Shown here: in pieces, positions 6,918-34,826 of the stretch | How positions within the stretch are numbered: position 1 is the stretch's first letter | Layout: every line of letters begins with the position of its first letter | Virus record (IMG/VR): IMGVR_UViG_3300050821_002957 | Span: 310,001-374,000 of that record | Strand: one strand, 5' to 3' | DNA: 64,000 nucleotides | Made by a program: the position numbers and the translations under genes | Notes under the pieces: model-generated | The model's input: the letters and a program-made list of their open reading frames with translations, nothing else | Told to the model about the DNA's origin: nothing | Database searches by the model: none

Positions 6918-6924
6918 CTAAATA
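6918..6924 (+). promoter_or_regulatory. Late (gp55-type) promoter
   Basis: CTAAATA, similar to T4 TATAAATA, upstream of a structural gene. Confidence 0.7.
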
Positions 6925-11699: not shown

Positions 11700-11817
11700 T
11701 GATCAGGATCGCCACAAGGACTTTGACCATAAACCAGACGAATTTGGTGATGCCAACTGCGCCTTTGGCGGCAAGATAGATCACCGCAATTAGTATCAAA
11801 AGAAAGAAAAAAGGCAT
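11617..11817 (-). CDS. Small membrane protein
   Basis: Two hydrophobic segments; own divergent promoter TTGACA-N17-TACTGT. Confidence 0.6.
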   Translation of the reverse strand: MPFFFLLILIAVIYLAAKGAVGITKFVWFMVKVLVAILIIKLILIFFGIVLFGSLAAPFLHPHPYW

Positions 11818-11825
11818 ACGAGCAC

Positions 11826-11883
11826 ACAGTACCATGTTTAGATGTAGATGTCAAGTTGACAGATCCAGAAAGCATGGTGAAAT
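11826..11883. promoter_or_regulatory. Back-to-back divergent sigma70-type promoters
   Basis: TGTCAAGTTGACA (11849-11861) supplies both -35 boxes; -10 TGAAAT (+) and TACTGT (-). Confidence 0.6.
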
Positions 11884-11959
11884 AGACACATGACGGCACA
11901 GCACCAGTTTCAGCAAAAGCGTGGTTCCAGGCCGTTAAATTTGGAGAACCACAGAAAGG

Positions 11960-12628
11960 ATGACAGATACCAAAGAACTAGAAATTACGCCACCCAAAAA
12001 GGCTACGACTCACTACGTTGACAACAAGAAATTATTTGCTGCACTAGTCGAATGGCAGAAGGATTTAAAGCGAGCGCACCGGAAGAAAGAACCGAAGCCG
12101 CAACTTCCCGAATACGTCGCCGAGTGCATGATGAAGATGGCGAATCGACTTTCTCAGAAGGCCGGATTCGTGAACTATACGTATCGAGAAGACATGGTAG
12201 GCGATGCCCTCGAATCATGTCTACGTTATATTCACAATTTCAATCCTGCAAAAAGTAACAACGCCTTTGCTTACATTACGCAAATTATTCATAATGCATT
12301 TATTAGGAGAATCCAGAAAGAACAGAAGCAGCTTTACGTCAAAATGCGTATTGTAGACGATGCTGACTTCGTAGGTTCGTATGAAAGGCAGGAAGGAGAC
12401 TCGACACAGTACAACAACTCTTATGTGACTTATCTACAGGAAAATAAGGGCGACGTGATTTCCAAATTTGAAAGTTGGAAAGAGTCGAAGAAGACCAAGG
12501 CAAATGCAAAGAAGAAAGAGGCAAAGCTGCTGGCTGGATTGTTTGTCGAAGAAGAGCCAGATGCAGCGGTTGTCGTGACAGTTACACCGAAAAAGAAAAA
12601 AGCGAAGGTAGCAAAGGCAAAGAAATGA
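11960..12628 (+). CDS. gp55: Late-transcription sigma factor gp55
   Basis: HYVDNKKL, FVNYTYREDMVGDALESCLRYIHNFNP.KS.NAFAYITQI..NAFIRRIQKEQKQ. Confidence 0.96.
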   Translation: MTDTKELEITPPKKATTHYVDNKKLFAALVEWQKDLKRAHRKKEPKPQLPEYVAECMMKMANRLSQKAGFVNYTYREDMVGDALESCLRYIHNFNPAKSNNAFAYITQIIHNAFIRRIQKEQKQLYVKMRIVDDADFVGSYERQEGDSTQYNNSYVTYLQENKGDVISKFESWKESKKTKANAKKKEAKLLAGLFVEEEPDAAVVVTVTPKKKKAKVAKAKK

Positions 12629-12900
12629 TCACAATTGATTACATCATCAGCGATATTGAAAGGCAGGACGGAAAGGTTTTGTTGTGGTTGACACGTCCGT
12701 TCGGGCCGATCCCAGAAGAACAAGCGGGAGATCTGAAGGAAGGCGACGAGATGACCATTAACATTGCATTCCCCGGCGACATTCCACCAGATGCACCCAC
12801 TGACGAAAACCAATTGAATTTGTTCGACGGGCATGAAGTTGTAAGCGACAATGGTGAGACTGTCCTAAGGGAAGAATGCGAACATGGAATTTACTCCTGA
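12625..12900 (+). CDS. Hypothetical acidic protein
   Basis: ATGA-coupled to gp55. Confidence 0.6.
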   Translation: MITIDYIISDIERQDGKVLLWLTRPFGPIPEEQAGDLKEGDEMTINIAFPGDIPPDAPTDENQLNLFDGHEVVSDNGETVLREECEHGIYS

Positions 12901-13474
12901 GTTTATTGCAGCAGCGAAGAAGGCGGCAAAAGAGACTGCCGACAGTTTCACTCTTCTTAATGCACCAAAGGCCGATCCGTTGGCTTTATTTCCTTCTGAA
13001 AACGAAGTATCTGAAGAAGAAGAAAAAGTACTGGCAATCATCAAAGAGATAGAACAAGTACCGAGTGCTTACGACAGGATAAATCATCGGCGACTAATCA
13101 ACTCGATCACAGAGTTTGTTCGACACGCTTTAATAGAGTCATTGTTTGAATATCCAGAAGATATTCCGCCGTTTGTAACTCGTATGATCGGTCTTTATCT
13201 TGATCATCTTCAAGAAAAGGAATCAATAGAAAGCTATTCGGTAGTCTGTGACACACGAAACAACACCGATGGAGTATATGACACGACCGAATTGGTGGTC
13301 GATGTCTACATTACGCCGACCAAGGCGATGGAATACATTCAACTCAATTTTGTTCTGACCGAAAAGGGTGTTGGATTTGATGAAGTCACCGGATCGTTTG
13401 ACAGCGAATCTGATGGTTCTGAATATGACAACGGTCTAGATTGGCCGAATGATTTTTGTCCCGAATACGAATGA
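12884..13474 (+). CDS. Stand-alone tail sheath (gp18) C-terminal domain protein
   Basis: SAYDRINHRRL...LFE...YSVVCDTRNNT...LVVDVYITPTKAMEYIQLNFVLTEKGVGFDEV matches the gp18 C-terminus. Confidence 0.8.
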   Translation: MEFTPEFIAAAKKAAKETADSFTLLNAPKADPLALFPSENEVSEEEEKVLAIIKEIEQVPSAYDRINHRRLINSITEFVRHALIESLFEYPEDIPPFVTRMIGLYLDHLQEKESIESYSVVCDTRNNTDGVYDTTELVVDVYITPTKAMEYIQLNFVLTEKGVGFDEVTGSFDSESDGSEYDNGLDWPNDFCPEYE

Positions 13475-13809
13475 CTTCCGATAACGACCAATACGAAGTA
13501 ACAGCAGTCAGTGATCATAGACGATGCTTCTCGAAGTTCATCTTTGACATGACGAACGTCGAAGGCTCTCCCGGCATCGGCTGCACCTGCAAGACAGACA
13601 CAATAGAGACACGAATTGTCGGTACACAGTCATATCGTAACTGGCAATTCCCAAAGGGCCGCAACCCGTTCAAGGTTGGTCAGATTGTCACACTTGAAAA
13701 TTTGAAGACTGGTCGAACCACCGGAGCCATTCAAGAAGCTGAGGCGAAGTTAGCAGAACGCCGCAAGAAAATACAACAGGATAAGGAAGCTGAGAAAGGG
13801 AAGTCATGA
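13471..13809 (+). CDS. Hypothetical protein
   Basis: ATGA-coupled ORF. Confidence 0.55.
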   Translation: MTSDNDQYEVTAVSDHRRCFSKFIFDMTNVEGSPGIGCTCKTDTIETRIVGTQSYRNWQFPKGRNPFKVGQIVTLENLKTGRTTGAIQEAEAKLAERRKKIQQDKEAEKGKS

Positions 13810-14144
13810 CAAGAGAACTGAGAAGGAAGTTGATAAAGGCAGCACATGAGAAGTATGTGGCAGCACGCTCTGAGTTATACAGAAAATGTCATGAAGAACT
13901 GATGGCAATTAAGGACGAAATTTACGCTCCGCTTGACCTTATAGAAATCGATGATAAGCTGGTTTTGAGCAGGAAGCCCACCCGATGGCGTAGTAACGGT
14001 AATGATGACATCTGCAACATAGGAGAACTATGTCTACGTCATCATCAAGAGCCGAAGAACTGCGAGAGGCTTACGAATTACTCTCTCAACACGCCCGATT
14101 TAGCAAGAAATTCTTCACTGATCAATACACAAAATTTGGCATGA
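13806..14144 (+). CDS. Hypothetical protein; 3' end possibly frameshifted (alternative stop near 14021)
   Basis: Coupled start; overlaps the SD-led ORF at 14030. Confidence 0.45.
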   Translation: MTRELRRKLIKAAHEKYVAARSELYRKCHEELMAIKDEIYAPLDLIEIDDKLVLSRKPTRWRSNGNDDICNIGELCLRHHQEPKNCERLTNYSLNTPDLARNSSLINTQNLA

Positions 14145-14182
14145 GAGGCATCAGACAGTTGATTGCTTTACTTGTGTTATGA
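14030..14182 (+). CDS. Hypothetical 50-aa protein (MSTSSSRAEELREAYELL...)
   Basis: AGGAG upstream; stop overlaps next ATG (ATGA). Confidence 0.55.
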   Translation: MSTSSSRAEELREAYELLSQHARFSKKFFTDQYTKFGMRGIRQLIALLVL

Positions 14183-14793
14183 ATTACCACATGAACAGAG
14201 TGAAGGCTGTTGAAAAAGGAGAGCACTGTTACGAGGGCAACCCTTGTAAATACGGACACACACTCAAAAGTATTGGGAAGCGGGATCGTTGTATCCCATG
14301 CAGGCAAAAGGATGAAAAACAACGAAACTCCACTGAGAAAGCTCGTAAACGAAGAAGTGAGGCCCAACGTCGATTCCGACGAACTGAACACGGCCAAGTC
14401 TATTTCAAAATCCTAGAGAAATCATTAGAACGTCGTGAAAGAAAACGGGCAAGAGAACAAACCGCCGACAGTAGAGAGAAGAAACGCCATTATCACAGAA
14501 AAGCAAAATACGGTATTGATCGACAAAATTTTGAGATGTGGTTAGCAATTCAAGAACATGTATGTCCAATTTGTCGGGAACCCTTGTATGAGGGTGTAAC
14601 CGGAAGTGAGCAGTTGTGTGTAGATCATGATCACAATTGTTGTCCAGGAAATCATACTTGTGGAAAATGTGTTCGTGGATTTTTGCATCGACGCTGTAAT
14701 ACTCTTTTGGGATTGACAGAAAAATATCCAGGAACATGGAGTGAAAACACTAGGCGATATTTGACTAGCAAAGGGATGGGTAGAATTATATGA
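14179..14793 (+). mobile_element. Endonuclease VII-like homing endonuclease
   Basis: KYGI...Q...CPIC...LCVDHDH.CC....CGKCVRGFLH..CN..LG. Confidence 0.85.
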
Positions 14794-15452
14794 CCTATCG
14801 TTGTTATCTCATCACGAATACAGTGAATCGCAAGCAATACGTCGGGTACACCAAGTATTCACTCATCACTCGTCTAACGGCACACTTTTCTAAAGCTAAG
14901 ACTGGTAGCCCCTCGACACTTCATGCAGCGATGCGGAAGTATGGCCGGGAGTCATTCAAGATTGAATTACTGTCCTTATCTAGAAGTCTTGATAGAGTAA
15001 GGTTCCGTGAACGGGGTTGGATCAAGACTTATAATACTTTCGACCAAGGATATAACATGTCCATTGGTGGAGAAACGTCGGCTCCTTCCACTAAAGTCTA
15101 TTCTGAAGTGCGTCGTCAAAAAATAGCTGCTAGAACGAAAGCATATTGGGCATCAGAAGAAGGTCAAGCAAAACGAAGGCGTCTCCAAATACGAAATAGA
15201 CGTATTCAATCTAATCGGATGAAGGTTCGTTGGGCAAATCCTACTGAAGCTCAACTGAAGGCACGTCGTCCAGGCCGACCCAAAGGTTCAAAAAACATCT
15301 GGCCGCTTCCATTTAAGTGCAAGCCAGTACAACACAACGATAAAATTTACAACAGCGCCAAAGAAGCCGCCGTAGAGTTTGGAGTAGTCGTTAGGACAAT
15401 CCATGCTTGGTGTGCGGCCCATAAGAATGGCTGGAGACATCCTTGGAAATAG
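14790..15452 (+). mobile_element. GIY-YIG homing endonuclease
   Basis: CYLITNTVNRKQYVGYT...R...H, AMRKYG, E..WI, GYN; C-terminal NUMOD1/HTH-like segment. Confidence 0.88.
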
Positions 15453-16537
15453 CATTGATCGGAGACACACACGCAGGGCATAAGAACGATAGCCTTCTGT
15501 TTCAGGACTACTTCAAGCGCTTTTACGATCAGGTGTTTTTTCCTGAATTGGAAAAGCGTAGTATCTCAACCATTATCCATGTGGGGGACGTATTTGACCG
15601 CCGTAAGTATGTCAATTTTCATATTCTTCAGCGAACGAGAGTTGATTTCTTGGAAAAATTGGCCGACTACGATACCCATTTCCTTTGTGGGAATCATGAC
15701 GTTTATTTTAGGGACTCCAATGAGACAAATGCCTTAAGAGAGCTTGTCTATGGACGCTATTCTAAGATTCACATCTACGAAGAGCCACAGGAGCTTGTCA
15801 TTGATGGTCTAAAAATCCTGCTTATGCCGTGGCTCAATCCTACGAACATGGACACTGGTCTCAGCATGATCGAACGTAGCACTGCATCGGTTTTGATGGG
15901 TCATTTAGAAATTGCTGGGTTCAAATTTGATCAGACTCAGGTGTGTGAGCATGGAATGGACAAGAACATTTTCGGCAAATTCAAGAAGGTGTTTTCCGGT
16001 CACTTCCATCATGCCTCAGAAGAAGGTCCGATCCGTTATCTTGGTGCGCCCTACGAATACACCTTTGCAGATCTGAACGATCCCAAAGGCTTCTACATCT
16101 TTGACACCGATACTTTAGAGCTTGAGTTCATTCAGAATCCAGAGCGAATGTTCTATCGAGTGATCTATGACGACCGGGAAGAAGATGCCGCCGAGAAGTT
16201 GCTGGGAATGGACTTCAGTGAGTTTGAAGGCAAGATGGTTCGGATCATTGTGCCATACAAGAACAATCCGGTCCTGTACGAGCAGTGGATCGACAAGCTG
16301 ATTCAGAACAATCCATCTGAGTGGTCCATCAAGGAACAACTGTCTCTTGAAGTGGATGGCGAAATCGAAGAGATGATGTTCGAGGAATTCAAGGTTGAAG
16401 GTGGTCAGGTCGTTCATGGCGGCACCGCTGAGATCCTGGACAAGTACATTGATGCTCTAGAAACCGATGTGAATAAAGACCGGCTTAAGGGTGTGCTGAG
16501 AGAATTGTTGGTCGAGGCTACGGCGTCTGTAAGTTGA
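15443..16537 (+). CDS. gp47: Recombination nuclease gp47 (Mre11/SbcD-like)
   Basis: GDTH, GDVFDRRK, GNHD, GHLE, SGHFH; TTG start with GGAG upstream. Confidence 0.93.
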   Translation: MEIALIGDTHAGHKNDSLLFQDYFKRFYDQVFFPELEKRSISTIIHVGDVFDRRKYVNFHILQRTRVDFLEKLADYDTHFLCGNHDVYFRDSNETNALRELVYGRYSKIHIYEEPQELVIDGLKILLMPWLNPTNMDTGLSMIERSTASVLMGHLEIAGFKFDQTQVCEHGMDKNIFGKFKKVFSGHFHHASEEGPIRYLGAPYEYTFADLNDPKGFYIFDTDTLELEFIQNPERMFYRVIYDDREEDAAEKLLGMDFSEFEGKMVRIIVPYKNNPVLYEQWIDKLIQNNPSEWSIKEQLSLEVDGEIEEMMFEEFKVEGGQVVHGGTAEILDKYIDALETDVNKDRLKGVLRELLVEATASVS

Positions 16538-16567: not shown

Positions 16568-16825
16568 ATGAGTAAGATGCCTGACGTGCTCCGGGAATTT
16601 TTGTGGTCTTTGACAGAAGCCGAAGCGAACGAAATTCTGGACTGGATGGCAGCTACTCCACAGGTTGCACGAGGCAGTCAAATCACGGATATTGTGTACC
16701 GAGAGCCGATCAAGCAGGTTACGCAAGTGAATTATCCATATGTGCCTGTCGCCGACCCATACTACAGTCATGAGTGTGTTCAGTGTTGGTTGCCGAAGTA
16801 CTTGTGCATGTGTCCAGGAAAATAA
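16568..16825 (+). CDS. Hypothetical protein
   Basis: Behind promoter; C-terminal Cys cluster. Confidence 0.6.
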   Translation: MSKMPDVLREFLWSLTEAEANEILDWMAATPQVARGSQITDIVYREPIKQVTQVNYPYVPVADPYYSHECVQCWLPKYLCMCPGK

Positions 16826-16826
16826 T

Positions 16827-17267
16827 ATGAGTCATCAAACATACGTCGCCGGGTTCCTCTTCGACAGCACCTATGAGCACGTCGCCCTGATCAAAAAAGA
16901 GAAACCAGCATGGCAGAAGGGAAAGTTGAATGGTATCGGCGGAAAGATTGAGCCGGGTGAAACTTCTATTGATGCCATGCGCCGAGAGTTCAGGGAAGAG
17001 ACCGGAGTTGACATTCAAGAATGGAACCAATACATTCAACTTTCGGGTGATGAATTTGCTGTCGAATTCTTTTACGCCATCGGTGATCCTTTCCTAGTCC
17101 AGACGACTACGGAAGAAGTGGTGAACGTCTATGCCACCGGCTACTTGCCTCAGCTTGATACTATTCCAAATTTGCAGTGGCTCATCCCAATGGCAATGAC
17201 GATGGAATTTGAATCGGCTGGAAAGTTTTTGATGAAAGAGATCCCAAAAGTCCAGGTAGGAAATTAA
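16827..17267 (+). CDS. NUDIX hydrolase
   Basis: GGKIEPGETSIDAMRREFREETGV Nudix box. Confidence 0.9.
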   Translation: MSHQTYVAGFLFDSTYEHVALIKKEKPAWQKGKLNGIGGKIEPGETSIDAMRREFREETGVDIQEWNQYIQLSGDEFAVEFFYAIGDPFLVQTTTEEVVNVYATGYLPQLDTIPNLQWLIPMAMTMEFESAGKFLMKEIPKVQVGN

Positions 17268-17430: not shown

Positions 17431-17633
17431 GAACATTCCGAGTGCGGGGAGATCGCAAAGACTGTACGTATGATTTATGGAAGCACCTGCCTATTAACGA
17501 TGGTGACACATTACAATTTGATGATGGTGACTCTCAATTTATAGCTGGCTATGGCTGGAAGTTCACACCAATAAATCGTAATTTTGTAGTTTCGGTTCCG
17601 TTTCACATCATCCAACAACTTCAACAACAATGA
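17427..17633 (+). CDS. Hypothetical protein
   Basis: Coupled ORF. Confidence 0.5.
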   Translation: MRTFRVRGDRKDCTYDLWKHLPINDGDTLQFDDGDSQFIAGYGWKFTPINRNFVVSVPFHIIQQLQQQ

Positions 17634-18067
17634 CAATGCGCCGATGCCCTGCATGTAAACAGGATAAAGAAGATACGTTGGATAACTTTTATAAGAGAAC
17701 TGGAACGAGTAGAGTACATACCTACTGTAAACCATGTTATGCAGCGAGAGGAGTGGCTTATAGAAAGACAGTCAAAGACACCCCGGAGTTTAAATCGAAA
17801 CGCAGATTTGAGCAAAGAAAACGTAGGATGGGAATCGATAAAGATACTTTTTGGAAGATGTTTGAATTTCAATCGGGTATTTGTCCTATATGTAAATTAT
17901 CGTTAGAAGAAGGTACAGGAAAGGTTCATGTAGATCATGATCACAAGACTGGGAAAATACGAGATTTATTGTGTCGCCGATGCAATATCATGATAGGGTT
18001 GGCACAAGACAATCGTGAAATTCTAGCGGCAGCGATTCGATATTTGGAGAAACATGATTGTATTTAA
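17630..18067 (+). mobile_element. Endonuclease VII-like homing endonuclease
   Basis: N-terminal CPAC/CKPC; Q.GICPIC...HVDHDHKTGKIRDLLC..CN..IG. Confidence 0.85.
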
Positions 18068-20464: not shown

Positions 20465-21802
20465 ATGACCCTACAAGAGAAAATTGAAACCAGGACTGCT
20501 CGGATCGGAATCATTGGTCTTGGGTATGTCGGCTTGCCTCTCGCCGTCGAATTTGGAAAGGCCGGATTTCATGTACATGGATTTGATCTTGACGAGGAAA
20601 AGGTTACCAACATCAAGACTGGATTTAATTATATTCCTGATGTCGATCCAGACGAACTTCGTAAGCTGTGTGATGCACATTTTGAAAACGTCAATCAAAG
20701 ACCACAACTGGGCGGAAGTTTGACGGCATCTTCAGTCTTTACTCCTTTAGCTGACATGGACGCAGTGATTATTTGTGTTCCTACTCCGCTCAAAAAGACA
20801 AAAGATCCCGATATTCAATACATTGTTGCGGCCTGTGAATCGATTGCACGACATCTTCATTCGCCGATGCTGATTTCTCTTGAATCCTCGACCTATCCTG
20901 GGACCACGGATGAATTGATGTTGCCGATGTTCCAACGAGAAGGATTTGAAGTCGGCAAGGATTTCTTCTTGTGCTTCTCGCCGGAAAGAGTCGATCCGGG
21001 CAACAAAGATTTTCATACCAAAAACATTCCCAAGGTCATCGGCGGTATCACTCCAGAATGCACTAGACTGGGCCAACTGTTGTATGAAACTGCCATTCAG
21101 ACGATCATTCCGGTCCAAGGCACACGCACGGCAGAGATGGTGAAGCTGCTTGAGAACACATTCCGCATGGTCAATATCGGATTGGTCAACGAACTGGCGA
21201 TCATGTGCGACAAGATGAACATCAACATCTGGGAAGTGATCGATGCCGCAAAGACCAAGCCATTCGGGTTCATGCCTTTCTATCCAGGTCCAGGTCTTGG
21301 TGGTCATTGTATTCCTATTGATCCGTTTTATTTTTCCTGGAAGGCCAAGCAATATGGATGTGAACCACGCTTCATTGAGACAGCAGGCTACGCCAACGCT
21401 CAGATGCCTCACTATGTCGTCCAGAAGGTCCAGGACGCATTGAACAAAGAGAAGAAGGCTATCAATGGGTCCAAGATTCTGATCCTAGGAATGGCGTACA
21501 AACGTGACATTGACGACGTGCGTGAATCCCCGGCGCTTGACGTTGCTCATTTACTATTGGACAAGGGCGCAGAGCTTCAATATTTCGACATGTACATTCC
21601 TAAAGCTAGGGTGAATGGATATCATCTGGAAAGCCTTAGAGTTGATCAAATTGACGATGCCGTAGATAACGCAGATTGCATCGTCATTACCACCGATCAC
21701 AGCTACATGGATTACAAAGATGTGGTCGAGCACTGCAAACTGATTGTCGATACCAGGAACGCTTTGAAAGGATTGAATGATCCTAAAATTGTTCGGATAT
21801 GA
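20465..21802 (+). CDS. Nucleotide-sugar (UDP-GlcNAc-type) 6-dehydrogenase
   Basis: GLGYVGLP, CVPTP, FSPER, KLLENTFR.VN, GPGLGGHCIPIDP, D.RESPA. Confidence 0.93.
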   Translation: MTLQEKIETRTARIGIIGLGYVGLPLAVEFGKAGFHVHGFDLDEEKVTNIKTGFNYIPDVDPDELRKLCDAHFENVNQRPQLGGSLTASSVFTPLADMDAVIICVPTPLKKTKDPDIQYIVAACESIARHLHSPMLISLESSTYPGTTDELMLPMFQREGFEVGKDFFLCFSPERVDPGNKDFHTKNIPKVIGGITPECTRLGQLLYETAIQTIIPVQGTRTAEMVKLLENTFRMVNIGLVNELAIMCDKMNINIWEVIDAAKTKPFGFMPFYPGPGLGGHCIPIDPFYFSWKAKQYGCEPRFIETAGYANAQMPHYVVQKVQDALNKEKKAINGSKILILGMAYKRDIDDVRESPALDVAHLLLDKGAELQYFDMYIPKARVNGYHLESLRVDQIDDAVDNADCIVITTDHSYMDYKDVVEHCKLIVDTRNALKGLNDPKIVRI

Positions 21803-32055: not shown

Positions 32056-32754
32056 ATGCAGATTTCTAATGAAACTTTGGTTATACTAAAAAATTTCGCT
32101 TCCATCGAAAAGAAAATGGAATTCAATCCTGGGCATACGCTCCGCACTCGTACTGGCTCAGTGTTCGTCGAAGCTAAAGTAGCCGAAGAGTTTCCTGATC
32201 CTAAGTCAGTCAATCGCTCTGAATTTGGCGTCTATGACATCAGCAATTTGCTCAATGTTCTCTCTCTGTTCGATGAGCCAGACATTGAATTTGGTGAGAC
32301 AAGTTTGATCATTACTTCGGCGAACGGCACGCATGAAGGGCGCTATGGCTACGCAGGACAAGGATCTCTCGGCCTACTCAAGTTTCCAAAGAAGATGCAT
32401 CCCTTACCGGAGGAAGTGATTGAGTTCACTCTGCCTGAAGAACAGTTGGTAAAACTTCAGAAGGCTGTCTCGTACATGGAGAAGCCGGAAATGAAAGTTA
32501 CGTCAGACGGAAAGGTTGTCAAAATTGGCACCGGCAACCACAAGAACGAAAACAGCAATTCATTTTCGATGGTGTTCGATGCAGAGCCGAACAAATTGAA
32601 ATGCAACATGTGGGTCGCCAAGGAACACCTGATCATGATGAAAGGATCATATAAAGGCTGGATTACGCCGACTTACATCATGCTCAAGAACACCAGTGGC
32701 TATGACTTGACTTACTACGTAGGAGTCGAACCGAACAGCACCTTTGGAAAATAA
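32056..32754 (+). CDS. gp45: Sliding clamp gp45
   Basis: MQISNETLVILKNFASI, FGVYDISNLLNVLSLF. Confidence 0.9.
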   Translation: MQISNETLVILKNFASIEKKMEFNPGHTLRTRTGSVFVEAKVAEEFPDPKSVNRSEFGVYDISNLLNVLSLFDEPDIEFGETSLIITSANGTHEGRYGYAGQGSLGLLKFPKKMHPLPEEVIEFTLPEEQLVKLQKAVSYMEKPEMKVTSDGKVVKIGTGNHKNENSNSFSMVFDAEPNKLKCNMWVAKEHLIMMKGSYKGWITPTYIMLKNTSGYDLTYYVGVEPNSTFGK

Positions 32755-32949
32755 ATGACACCAGAATTATTGGCGAACAAATCTGTACTGTACCTATTTC
32801 ATGGTATCTGTCTTGCAATGTTGCTGGGTGGAACGTACATGTTGGTCCATAGTGGTAATTGGGCAATCTGCGGTGGCGTCTGGTTGTTGATCATTGGAAA
32901 TAACATGTCCAACTGGCTGCGTAATGTCGAAGAAGACGAAGAAAGATGA
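32755..32949 (+). CDS. Small membrane protein
   Basis: Hydrophobic ORF between gp45 and gp44. Confidence 0.55.
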   Translation: MTPELLANKSVLYLFHGICLAMLLGGTYMLVHSGNWAICGGVWLLIIGNNMSNWLRNVEEDEER

Positions 32950-32973
32950 GTGCAATGAGGATTGGGACGATTA

Positions 32974-33948
32974 ATGGCTGAACACGTAATTTGGGTAGAG
33001 AAGTACCGCCCACATAAAATCTCGGATTGTGTCCTCCCGGAAAACATCAAGGAAACCTTTGCACAAATAGTTAAGCAAGGTCTCATTCCAAATTTGATCC
33101 TGACCGGCAAGGCAGGCGGCGGCAAGACCACAGCAGCTAGGGCTATTTGCGACGAGCTTAATGTCGAAAGCATCTTGATCAATGCATCCGAGAACGGTAA
33201 CATCGACACTCTTCGCAATGAGATTCGAGAGTTTGCATCGACCGAAAGTTTTTTACGAGATTTGGACGCTGATGACAATAGTAGTGTAAAGCGCAAAGTA
33301 GTCATCCTCGACGAAGCAGACCATCTCAATCCTAACTCGACACAACCGGCACTTCGTAGCTTTATTGAAGAGTTTGCCTCGAATGTCAGTTTCATTTTCA
33401 CTTGCAATTCGTTGGGTAAGATCATTCAGCCGTTGCATTCAAGAACATCGGTCATCGAATACAATATTCCGAATGGTGAAAAGGCTACATTGCAGGGTCA
33501 GTTTTACAAGCGTCTGAAATTTATTCTGGATACCGAGAATGTTGAATTTGATCCGAATGTCGTCAAGGCGCTTGTGGTCAAGTTCTGGCCTGATTTCCGG
33601 CGCACCATTAATGAACTACAGCGCTACTCTTTGTCTGGGAAGATTGACGAAGGGATTTTGGCTCAAGTTCGTGATGTTCCTTTGTCGGAATTGATCAAGG
33701 CGCTTAAGGATAAAGATTTTCAGTCGATGCGGAAGTGGTGTGCAGTCCATCACGATTCAGATTCAGTAAAGATCATTAGGAAATTGTACGAAGTGCTGTA
33801 CGAGGTCTTCAACAAAAATTCGATACCAGATGTAGTAATTCTGATGGGTAGGTATCAGTATCAGGCTGCTTTTGTGAACGACCATGAATTGCATCTCGTG
33901 GCCTTTCTTACAGAGTTAATGTACGGAGATGCAATCCAGGAAGCATAG
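32974..33948 (+). CDS. gp44: Clamp loader large subunit gp44
   Basis: WVEKYRP, GKAGGGKTT, ILDEAD, PLHSR, PDFRRTINELQRY. Confidence 0.95.
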   Translation: MAEHVIWVEKYRPHKISDCVLPENIKETFAQIVKQGLIPNLILTGKAGGGKTTAARAICDELNVESILINASENGNIDTLRNEIREFASTESFLRDLDADDNSSVKRKVVILDEADHLNPNSTQPALRSFIEEFASNVSFIFTCNSLGKIIQPLHSRTSVIEYNIPNGEKATLQGQFYKRLKFILDTENVEFDPNVVKALVVKFWPDFRRTINELQRYSLSGKIDEGILAQVRDVPLSELIKALKDKDFQSMRKWCAVHHDSDSVKIIRKLYEVLYEVFNKNSIPDVVILMGRYQYQAAFVNDHELHLVAFLTELMYGDAIQEA

Positions 33949-33950
33949 CA

Positions 33951-34307
33951 ATGGAATTCAGACAAGGTGATCGTGTAGAAATTTTGAAGGGCAAAAGGCA
34001 GGGCCAAATTGCCAAGGTGACTGAGGTTCAGGGTACAGAGAGAGTTCTTGTCGAATTTGAAGGTGGAAAATATGAAGTCTCTTACCTGAAAGAAGATGTC
34101 GTTCTAAGAACCAAGGCATCAAAGATTAATCCGCTGGTAGAAGATGGAACGGTCGGCTGCACTCCATTTCAGGTAACCGGCGACAAAAAGCTCCGGTTGG
34201 TTGCACATCTCGTCAAACAAGGAAAATTGTGTCCGAGTTGGCCTTATTCTTGTTCCGGCGAATGTGAATCATCAAAGGAAGAAAAAGCAAGAGGACAAGC
34301 AAAATGA
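33951..34307 (+). CDS. KOW-motif protein
   Basis: FRQGDRVEILKGKRQGQIAKV. Confidence 0.6.
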   Translation: MEFRQGDRVEILKGKRQGQIAKVTEVQGTERVLVEFEGGKYEVSYLKEDVVLRTKASKINPLVEDGTVGCTPFQVTGDKKLRLVAHLVKQGKLCPSWPYSCSGECESSKEEKARGQAK

Positions 34308-34510
34308 AAAAGTGGGATGTAAAGATGATCAGCGTTGGTGCTAACACTGATGTCGAAGCAGAATTGAAAGCAGAGGGACAGAATGGCTGGAGGTTCGCAC
34401 ACGCACTCCAGACACCATTCGGAGTCAAGTTCGTTCTAGAGCGCCAGTTAGACGAAGAAGTCGAAGTCGTTTCAAAAGACGATGAACTGGCAAAGAAGTT
34501 TGGGATCTAA
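34304..34510 (+). CDS. DUF4177-like small protein
   Basis: LKAEGQNGWRF...LER. Confidence 0.55.
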   Translation: MKKWDVKMISVGANTDVEAELKAEGQNGWRFAHALQTPFGVKFVLERQLDEEVEVVSKDDELAKKFGI

Positions 34511-34511
34511 T

Positions 34512-34826
34512 ATGTACACAGAAAAAATGGTAAGGACTAACGAATGGTCAAATACTGATCGTATTCCTCGGGAAGATGTCTACAAGGTCATCGACGGGGA
34601 ACGAGAGTATCAAGAGAACCTTCCCGGCAACCGTAGCGAGAATCCAAAGCGTATTCGTGCGGTCAGCGAGTACCTGACGATGCTTGATCACTACGTGCGT
34701 CATGCTCAAGACTCCTGGACCACACGAGCCGGAATCGAAGATCCTCTGAATGACATGAGAAAGATTGCGGCGCTGGCTATTCGTTGCATGGAAGAGTGGG
34801 GCGCAATTCCAAGAGAGTTCAAATGA
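34512..34826 (+). CDS. Hypothetical protein (paralog A)
   Basis: REDVYKVIDGER.YQ...RKIAALAIRCME..GA.PR. Confidence 0.7.
   Translation: MYTEKMVRTNEWSNTDRIPREDVYKVIDGEREYQENLPGNRSENPKRIRAVSEYLTMLDHYVRHAQDSWTTRAGIEDPLNDMRKIAALAIRCMEEWGAIPREFK

Follow-up and report, generated by a model that had tools for sequence, protein, structure and literature searches.

A stand-alone, fast-evolving tail sheath domain IV gene lies behind the late sigma factor gene gp55 in a giant T4-like soil phage

A giant T4-like phage from soil metagenomes carries, directly behind its late sigma factor gene, a small and rapidly evolving gene, here called B, that retains only the inner, tube-proximal "handshake" domain of the tail sheath. 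In related phages, this gene is paired with a similar mini-copy of the most conserved piece of the capsid protein, which suggests mimicry of late proteins, a function inferred here from sequence and context alone. The gene resides in a 64,000-nucleotide stretch of DNA (the window; positions 310,001 to 374,000 of the 405,631-bp IMG/VR virus record IMGVR_UViG_3300050821_002957), which contains T4-type replication and recombination genes in the usual order, namely uvsY, uvsW, gp55, gp47, gp46, and DNA polymerase. A sequence-only reading had described about 110 residues of the gp18 C-terminal, tube-proximal domain with acidic flanks, standing alone in the gp55 operon, far from the tail module and downstream of a non-late promoter, and our analysis confirmed this observation in every point. 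Its functional interpretation, namely that the protein is a decoy for host sensors of tail proteins, a sheath-assembly modulator, or a poison for competing contractile tails, was only partly supported, since its structural reading is right, whereas the evidence presented below shifts the odds among the three proposed functions without proving any of them.

To establish the identity of B (protein P0001; 196 residues, translated without any alternative genetic code), we compared it with curated families, solved structures, and the sheath protein of its own genome. B matches Pfam PF17482 (Phage_sheath_1C) at E 6e-9 with 36.3 bits against a gathering cutoff of 26.9, over residues 60-159 and profile positions 3-104 of 104, and it matches PHROG 23 (tail sheath) at 3.9e-18. 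A phmmer search against PDB aligned residues 54-170 with T4 gp18 residues 539-656 of 659 (E 1.3e-17), a similarity far beyond chance. Consistent with this, an AlphaFold2 model built on a 30-row alignment showed pLDDT values of 86-97 over residues 60-160, where it predicts two helices, three strands, and one short helix, and a Foldseek search with this model returned the T4 sheath (9mkb, 3e-6) and the KP1 sheath, followed by pyocin, PVC, and AFP sheaths and, more weakly, by the T4 sheath initiator gp25 (5iw9, E about 1e-2, TM 0.34/0.48). Both flanks are acidic and modeled with low confidence, with net charges of -7 for residues 1-57, -9 for residues 172-196, and -26 for the whole protein (pI 4.2). 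The real sheath gene of this genome encodes 794 residues and lies next to the tube gene at 32369-34753 (-) of the record, about 290 kb away from B (at 322884), to which it is 39% identical over the shared domain. Further, B contains neither the Pfam Phage_sheath_1 region nor gp18 domains I-III, and this copy has no significant match to the sheath N-terminal arm (p=0.99), whereas the C-terminal arm is present; B is therefore a member of the sheath C-domain family by sequence and predicted fold, but it is not a sheath protein.

B lies in a tightly overlapping run of reading frames, gp55-A-B-C-D, in which gp55 and A overlap by ATGA, A and B by 17 nt, and B/C and C/D by ATGA, which indicates one transcript and coupled translation. 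The features of this region, in window coordinates, are as follows.

11856..11883 (+): promoter-like site upstream of gp55, comprising TTGACA (11856-11861), a 16-nt spacer, and TGn + TGAAAT (11875-11883), a variant of the genome's TTGACA-type (early/middle-like) class, as judged against the GTTGACAG(AT) class and the early class of about 22 copies
11960..12628 (+): gp55, late-transcription sigma factor (Pfam Sigma70_r2, 1.2e-6; PHROG 234 late sigma factor, 1.1e-53), 82-92% identical across the clade
12625..12900 (+): ORF A, 91 aa, a conserved small protein with no assigned function, whose start overlaps the gp55 stop (ATGA)
12884..13474 (+): ORF B, 196 aa, stand-alone sheath domain-IV protein ("mini-sheath")
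12884..13054 (+): B residues 1-57, a leader with a conserved N-terminal start and a proline-containing motif (ADPLALFP type) followed by an acidic run, predicted helical at low confidence (pLDDT 52-74)
13055..13396 (+): B residues 58-171, the sheath C-terminal domain (two helices and three strands) plus the C-terminal arm, equivalent to T4 gp18 residues about 541-657
13397..13471 (+): B residues 172-196, an acidic, aromatic-containing tail that extends beyond the point where gp18 ends (own gp18 ends at the position equivalent to B residue 173)
13471..13809 (+): ORF C, about 112 aa from the ATG at 13471 (ATGA overlap with the B stop), a conserved small protein with a CxC motif and no assigned function
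13806..14144 (+): ORF D, 112 aa, ATGA overlap with C
14179..15452 (+): two homing-endonuclease-type genes (Endonuclease VII/HNH, 14179-14793, PF02945 3.5e-10; GIY-YIG, 14790-15452, PF01541 1.6e-8) that fill the rest of the gp55-gp47 slot
15443..16537 (+): gp47, Mre11-like recombination nuclease subunit (Pfam Metallophos, 1.4e-8), the downstream border of the variable slot

To assess the likely timing of expression, we examined promoter motifs across the genome. The T4 late promoter sequence TATAAATA is absent from the window and not enriched in the genome, and we therefore replaced it with motifs obtained from a de novo count of intergenic words, which yielded two classes. The first, CTAAATA, has 79 sites, of which 51 lie within 150 nt upstream of a gene start, including gp18, gp19, and most of the structural region, and we take it as the late promoter; the second, of about 22 copies, is a long TTGACA-type class with an extended -10, which looks early. 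No CTAAATA lies on the + strand between window positions 6918 and 59654, and none on either strand between 6918 and 51494, whereas the TTGACA / TGnTGAAAT site sits in front of gp55. The non-late promoter is thus supported, although by consensus matching only and not by transcript mapping. The one RNA-library run held a single 230-nt contig over the 5' end of gp55, outside B, and contigs of this kind cannot show transcription.

Next, we asked whether B is a real gene. A word-index search restricted to proteins of similar length found one relative, and its repetition with a two-sequence profile found several more, whereas a scan of IMG/VR with B itself was swamped by full-length gp18, the one short frame there (contig L016; L numbers denote contigs and P numbers proteins) being a frameshifted full gp18. 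B is very rare: an exhaustive profile search of 1.84 billion representative proteins found only a handful of clusters, with five full-length family members scoring 208-228 bits, then a gap down to ordinary sheath proteins that scored at most 173 bits and matched only in the C-domain, and a few further short proteins. Every member whose neighborhood could be read lies directly downstream of gp55 and upstream of gp47. In a tree of the C-domain, 8 B proteins are separated from 32 gp18 domains by one branch (support 93/88), and own gp18 groups with the other gp18s and not with B, which argues for one old origin and led us to reject independent capture or gene conversion from the phage's own gp18. 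The B end branches measure 0.07-3.5 substitutions per column (six of the eight above 0.7), against a whole-tree median of 0.2 and gp18 branches of at most 0.7.

B is by far the fastest-changing gene of its neighborhood, changing 2-14 times faster than its neighbors. It is 32-46% identical between lineages in which gp55 is 82-92%, gp47 67-76%, and ORFs A and C 44-75% identical, whereas C-terminal parts of true gp18 from unrelated metagenomic phages are still 61-72% identical. Its dN is 0.36-0.57, against 0.04-0.27 for its neighbors. Synonymous sites are saturated in every available pair (dS above 1 or undefined), so that only dN and a rough upper bound could be given, and the one finite estimate gives a ratio of about 0.12. 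Together with frames that are intact in about ten diverged uncultured lineages, with no breaks except in one decayed copy, this shows purifying selection, though weaker than on the neighbors. Lack of purifying selection or of a structural match to the sheath C-domain had been named beforehand as grounds for rejecting the reading, and neither was found.

We then examined which sheath residues were kept and which were lost. Among the positions that are nearly invariant in gp18, 24 are kept in at least 6 of 7 B proteins, and almost all of these lie in the three strands, the short motif before them, and the final strand, which is the C-terminal arm and whose F and E are invariant in all B proteins and in gp18. 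Many helix and loop positions are lost, including six conserved basic residues (own gp18 K697, K704, R728, R734, K765, and R768) that are mostly lost and that, by our reading and by analogy with pyocin and T4 structures, may face the tube. The core domain of B has a net charge of -10, against -1 for the same part of own gp18. Three relatives (P0002, P0003, and P0138) carry a clear copy of the sheath N-terminal arm between the leader and the C-domain (shuffle p<0.0005, 0.004, and 0.0005, respectively), and two others (P0004 and P0022) keep a further gp18 motif upstream of the domain. The extra leader is present in most lineages and the acidic tail in some, with similar tails occurring in P0002-P0004 but absent in P0017, P0022, and the L096 copy. 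In T4, gp18 domain IV consists of the first about 24 residues plus residues 510-659, lies on the inside of the sheath, and keeps the connectivity between subunits in both states, and a gp18 lacking residues 511-659 does not polymerize (PMC3004832); in a related phage, the C-domain of a lower-ring subunit is the platform on which the N- and C-terminal strands of two upper-ring subunits dock (PMC10457771). B is thus best described as an internally deleted gp18 that retains only domain IV.

To determine how widely the gene is distributed, we scanned IMG/VR with gp55 and mapped the neighboring genes. In distant T4-like contigs (gp55 at most 50% identical), gp47 follows gp55 within 100-300 nt, whereas in the close clade (gp55 at least 70% identical) the slot varies. 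It contains (i) A-B-C in this window, L003, L084, and L087, with L090 (cut after B) and P0003 and P0138 (judged from small ORFs of matching size that flank B) looking the same; (ii) a capsid mini-protein plus B; (iii) ORF C alone in L100; (iv) other small ORFs with no B in L094/L097, L095, and L098; or (v) truncated copies of both genes in L099. Homing-endonuclease genes (HNH and GIY-YIG) and inteins crowd the region. B is therefore a conserved but optional gene that is not needed to build a tail.

In L088/L089, L091-93, L096, L133/L134, and the P0179 contigs, the gene between gp55 and B encodes a 122-147-aa protein that hits Pfam Gp23. Its residues 75-115 equal T4 gp23 92-132 (E 2e-11), a segment in the first quarter of gp23 that we take to be the Gol region, which is the most conserved part of gp23, binds EF-Tu, and triggers the Lit abortive-infection protease (PMC3014915). 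Between two lineages, the 40-codon core differs at 29 of 120 nucleotides but at only 2 amino acids, whereas the flanks are only about 50-60% identical between those two lineages, yet carry motifs of their own that are conserved across the family. One further relative, P0031, which also lies directly after gp55, appears to join a piece resembling the C-terminus of gp23 to the sheath domain (score 62, above all 1000 shuffles, whose maximum was 55), an observation that is suggestive but not proven. Two or three different architectures in the same slot therefore combine B with conserved pieces of the major capsid protein.

The common denominator of the slot is conserved segments of the two most abundant late proteins, which would be made as small soluble proteins together with the factor that switches late genes on; it is not sheath assembly as such. 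This pattern, the optional presence, the fast evolution, the acidification, and the loss of lattice or tube-type residues lead us to propose tentatively (probability about 0.3) that B acts as a molecular mimic, made with gp55 before the real sheath and capsid proteins appear and kept soluble by its strong acidity, its loss of conserved basic residues, and, in this copy, its extra tails. In this view, B would offer the conserved sheath epitope to a partner that would otherwise meet gp18, most likely a host surveillance or abortive-infection factor, and bind it without consequence as a decoy or competitive inhibitor, whereas the companion mini-protein of the sister lineages would do the same for the capsid protein. 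The domain identity, the predicted fold, the operon context, the conservation, the optional presence, the fast evolution, and the pairing with gp23 pieces rest directly on our analyses, whereas early or middle expression, solubility, mimicry, binding of any partner, and the host target are inferences. The Gol region is the one phage segment long known to be sensed by an abortive-infection system, Lit (PMC3014915), which favors such mimicry. However, a free Gol peptide activates Lit rather than blocking it (PMC3014915), so the capsid mini-protein is not obviously a decoy; no defense system is known to sense a tail sheath, which a 2026 survey lists only as a possible future target and which in one study did not trigger Septu; and B, at 39% identity to its own gp18, is a poor mimic at the sequence level. 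In a still bolder and rather doubtful reading, a clade of soil T4-like phages would place a module of mini late proteins, comprising the handshake-only sheath domain plus either a Gol-region mini-protein or a capsid-sheath fusion, directly behind the late sigma factor gene as pre-emptive mimics of the most conserved epitopes of the two most abundant late proteins, which would blunt host sensors for capsid and sheath, or occupy EF-Tu in place of gp23, just before those proteins are made, which would be the first counter-defense built from fragments of a phage's own structural genes.

The main rival, nearly as likely as the mimic, is that B binds gp18 itself and acts as a cap, brake, or chaperone, using its retained β-sheet platform and C-terminal arm to take up the N- and C-terminal arms of free gp18 or to fill the open platform of the last sheath ring, and thereby holding back premature, baseplate-independent polymerization or setting sheath termination, with its production alongside gp55 ensuring its presence before gp18. 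Domain IV is what links sheath subunits, full-length sheath proteins self-assemble into polysheaths when expressed alone (PMC3004832, PMC6357053), and the predicted fold also resembles gp25. The retained handshake residues fit this reading equally well. It accounts less well for the optional distribution, as B has been lost or has decayed in close relatives that must still build tails, and it does not by itself explain the pairing or fusion with gp23 pieces, unless those are capsid-assembly brakes; moreover, no cultured T4-like phage has or needs such a factor, judging from the inspected matches described below. A structure prediction of B with the last 198 residues of own gp18, run without controls, gave an ipSAE of 0.00, which bears on neither reading.

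The remaining explanations appear less likely. A poison subunit that enters or caps the lattices of co-infecting T4-like phages, satellites, or host tailocins would fit the fast evolution and patchy presence of a conflict gene, and the handshake is shared by all contractile systems (PMC10457771), with pyocin, PVC, and AFP sheaths among our fold hits. However, the Gol core of the companion differs at only 2 of 40 residues from the gp23 of this window's genome, a different phage of the clade, so that self-poisoning would be hard to avoid if each phage's own gp23 is as conserved; B is also as distant from its own gp18 as from any other, which leaves no visible self/non-self logic, and is far from T6SS and tailocin sheaths in sequence. 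Equally unlikely, B (with A and C, or with the gp23 mini-protein) could bind gp55 or the clamp/RNA polymerase and couple late transcription or translation to the state of assembly, in the manner of FlgM with sigma-28, or the Gol mini-protein could tune EF-Tu. The invariant position directly after gp55, the overlapping frames that imply co-translation, the binding of EF-Tu by Gol (PMC3014915), and the apparent resemblance of the acidic, aromatic tails to partner-binding tails are compatible with this, but we found no sequence or fold link to any anti-sigma or clamp-binding family, and phages with near-identical gp55 manage without B. A minor virion component, such as an adaptor ring at the baseplate or neck end of the sheath, is likewise possible but unlikely: several contractile systems use sheath paralogs in special rings, and some relatives of B keep all three handshake elements, yet B lies outside the structural module without a late motif, is optional, has lost basic residues while gaining strong acidity, and evolves far faster than structural neighbors would. 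A functionless leftover of recombination, for which the crowding of homing endonucleases and the truncated copies in L099 might argue, is largely excluded by intact frames in about ten lineages separated by saturated synonymous change, by position-specific retention, and by conserved start-stop overlaps.

Comparison with known systems indicates what is new. Relative to T4 gp18, B shares the sheath domain, the predicted fold, the C-terminal arm, and, in three relatives, the N-terminal arm, but is 196 residues long rather than the 794 of the genome's own gp18, has an extra leader and an acidic tail, and evolves several-fold faster. T4 gp25/TssE is likewise a small stand-alone protein with the handshake-domain fold that accepts sheath arms, but B has no sequence relationship to it and no GPW_gp25 hit in Pfam or PHROG, is a recent-type paralog of gp18 itself, lies outside the baseplate module, and is optional, whereas gp25 is essential. 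The sheath paralogs of extracellular contractile injection systems (Afp2-4 and Pvc2-4) are extra sheath-family genes with specialized roles and a shared fold, but they are full-size proteins encoded inside the structural operon. The Gol segment exists in T4 only inside gp23, whereas here it forms a separate gene with its own conserved flanks. In a tblastn search of 50,697 cultured-phage records, with matches in 2184 records, each of the 60 inspected hits lay inside a full-length sheath gene, leaving aside three records with a second match. While the domain itself is familiar and sheath proteins are known as full-size building blocks, a conserved gene that keeps only the strand-exchange domain, is not late-driven, and sits with the late sigma factor has not, as far as these searches show, been described. 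Its repeated pairing with a stand-alone copy of the Gol segment, the classic trigger of an abortive-infection system, turns the vague idea that phages mimic their own conserved late proteins into a concrete gene pair; if B instead caps gp18, it would be the first dedicated regulator of sheath polymerization in a phage and a handy tool for controlling the assembly of sheath nanotubes.

We also asked whether the neighboring ORFs A and C are fragments of structural genes. Neither has a paralog in the genome by tblastn or HMM searches, a Pfam or PHROG hit, or a match among the cultured-phage records, and their Atlas models show only low-confidence small β folds, that of ORF A being TOBE/OB-like; ORF A is also not related to the N-terminal part of the Gol mini-protein. 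ORF D has no hit and was not seen in relatives. A search for further relatives through ORF C found none in IMG/VR, and a single metagenome scan returned only the same phage (L085) and L084. ORF A orthologs are 44-75% identical in L084, L003, L087, and L090, whereas ORF C is 63-71% identical in L084, L003, and L087 and is also present in L100, where B is absent.

In relatives (L088, L096, L133 and L134, contigs lying outside the window), a conserved gene encoding 122-147 aa was found directly after gp55, at the following positions:
L088:1366-1767
L096:512-898
L133:4001-4369
L134:3448-3816
The core of this gene product equals T4 gp23 92-132 (the Gol region), whereas its flanks have conserved motifs of their own and an acidic tail ending in an aromatic residue; the gene is always followed by a B-type mini-sheath. 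In another relative (L132:739-1455; protein P0031), a 238-aa protein encoded directly after gp55 resembles the C-terminus of gp23 in its first half and comprises the sheath C-domain in its second half, and is thus a possible capsid-sheath fusion, although the shuffle test was passed only narrowly (score 62 against a null maximum of 55). In the cultured-phage collection, three of the 2184 phage records with matches to B contain two separate matches, which may represent split sheath genes, record-start artefacts, or second sheath-domain genes.

The genome's own gp18 (G000:C1:32369-34753, minus strand, in the virus record G000; partly in L002), which encodes the real sheath protein, is 794 aa long and has a long Gly/Thr/Ala/Val-rich middle region containing a repeated short motif (GTGY..AP.V type), which is presumably an outer decoration domain. 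In addition, an IMG/VR contig (L016:2089-3995) has a full sheath gene whose last 146 codons are in another frame, reflecting either a frameshift or a sequencing error.

Two Endonuclease VII/HNH-type genes and one GIY-YIG gene (window 14179-15452 and 17630-18067) lie within 4 kb around gp47, and the gp55-gp46 region is a hotspot for mobile endonucleases. Moreover, gp55 of three relatives (L003:3847-5781, L099:1223-3076, and L100:2414-4474) carries a roughly 420-aa insertion at the same site, after the conserved FVNY, with the look of an intein or homing element, and the uvsW gene of the contig carrying the B relative P0138 has Hint/LAGLIDADG hits. A NUDIX gene lies between gp47 and gp46, and a UDP-glucose dehydrogenase gene lies after gp46 (window 16740-17267 and 20465-21802), while relatives add a SIR2-family gene in the same interval (L003:9458-10882).

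A soil metatranscriptome library contains a 230-nt contig identical to the gp55 promoter and 5' region (window 11800-12013), which cannot be told apart from carried-over DNA. Genome-wide, the late-type motif of G000 is CTAAATA, and not the T4 TATAAATA; of its 79 sites, 51 lie within 150 nt upstream of gene starts, most of them at 10-30 nt. Within the window, this motif is found at 6918 (+), 51494 (-), 59654 (+), and 60613 (+). About 22 copies of a roughly 45-nt early-promoter-like block are also distributed across G000 (for example, at window 5913 (-) and 47351 (+), and at G000 957, 1454, 12614, 61647, and 103217), each comprising a near-palindromic upstream element, then TTGACA/T, then an extended -10, and then an ATG about 8 nt later. 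The very short gap before the start codon suggests short or leaderless transcripts.
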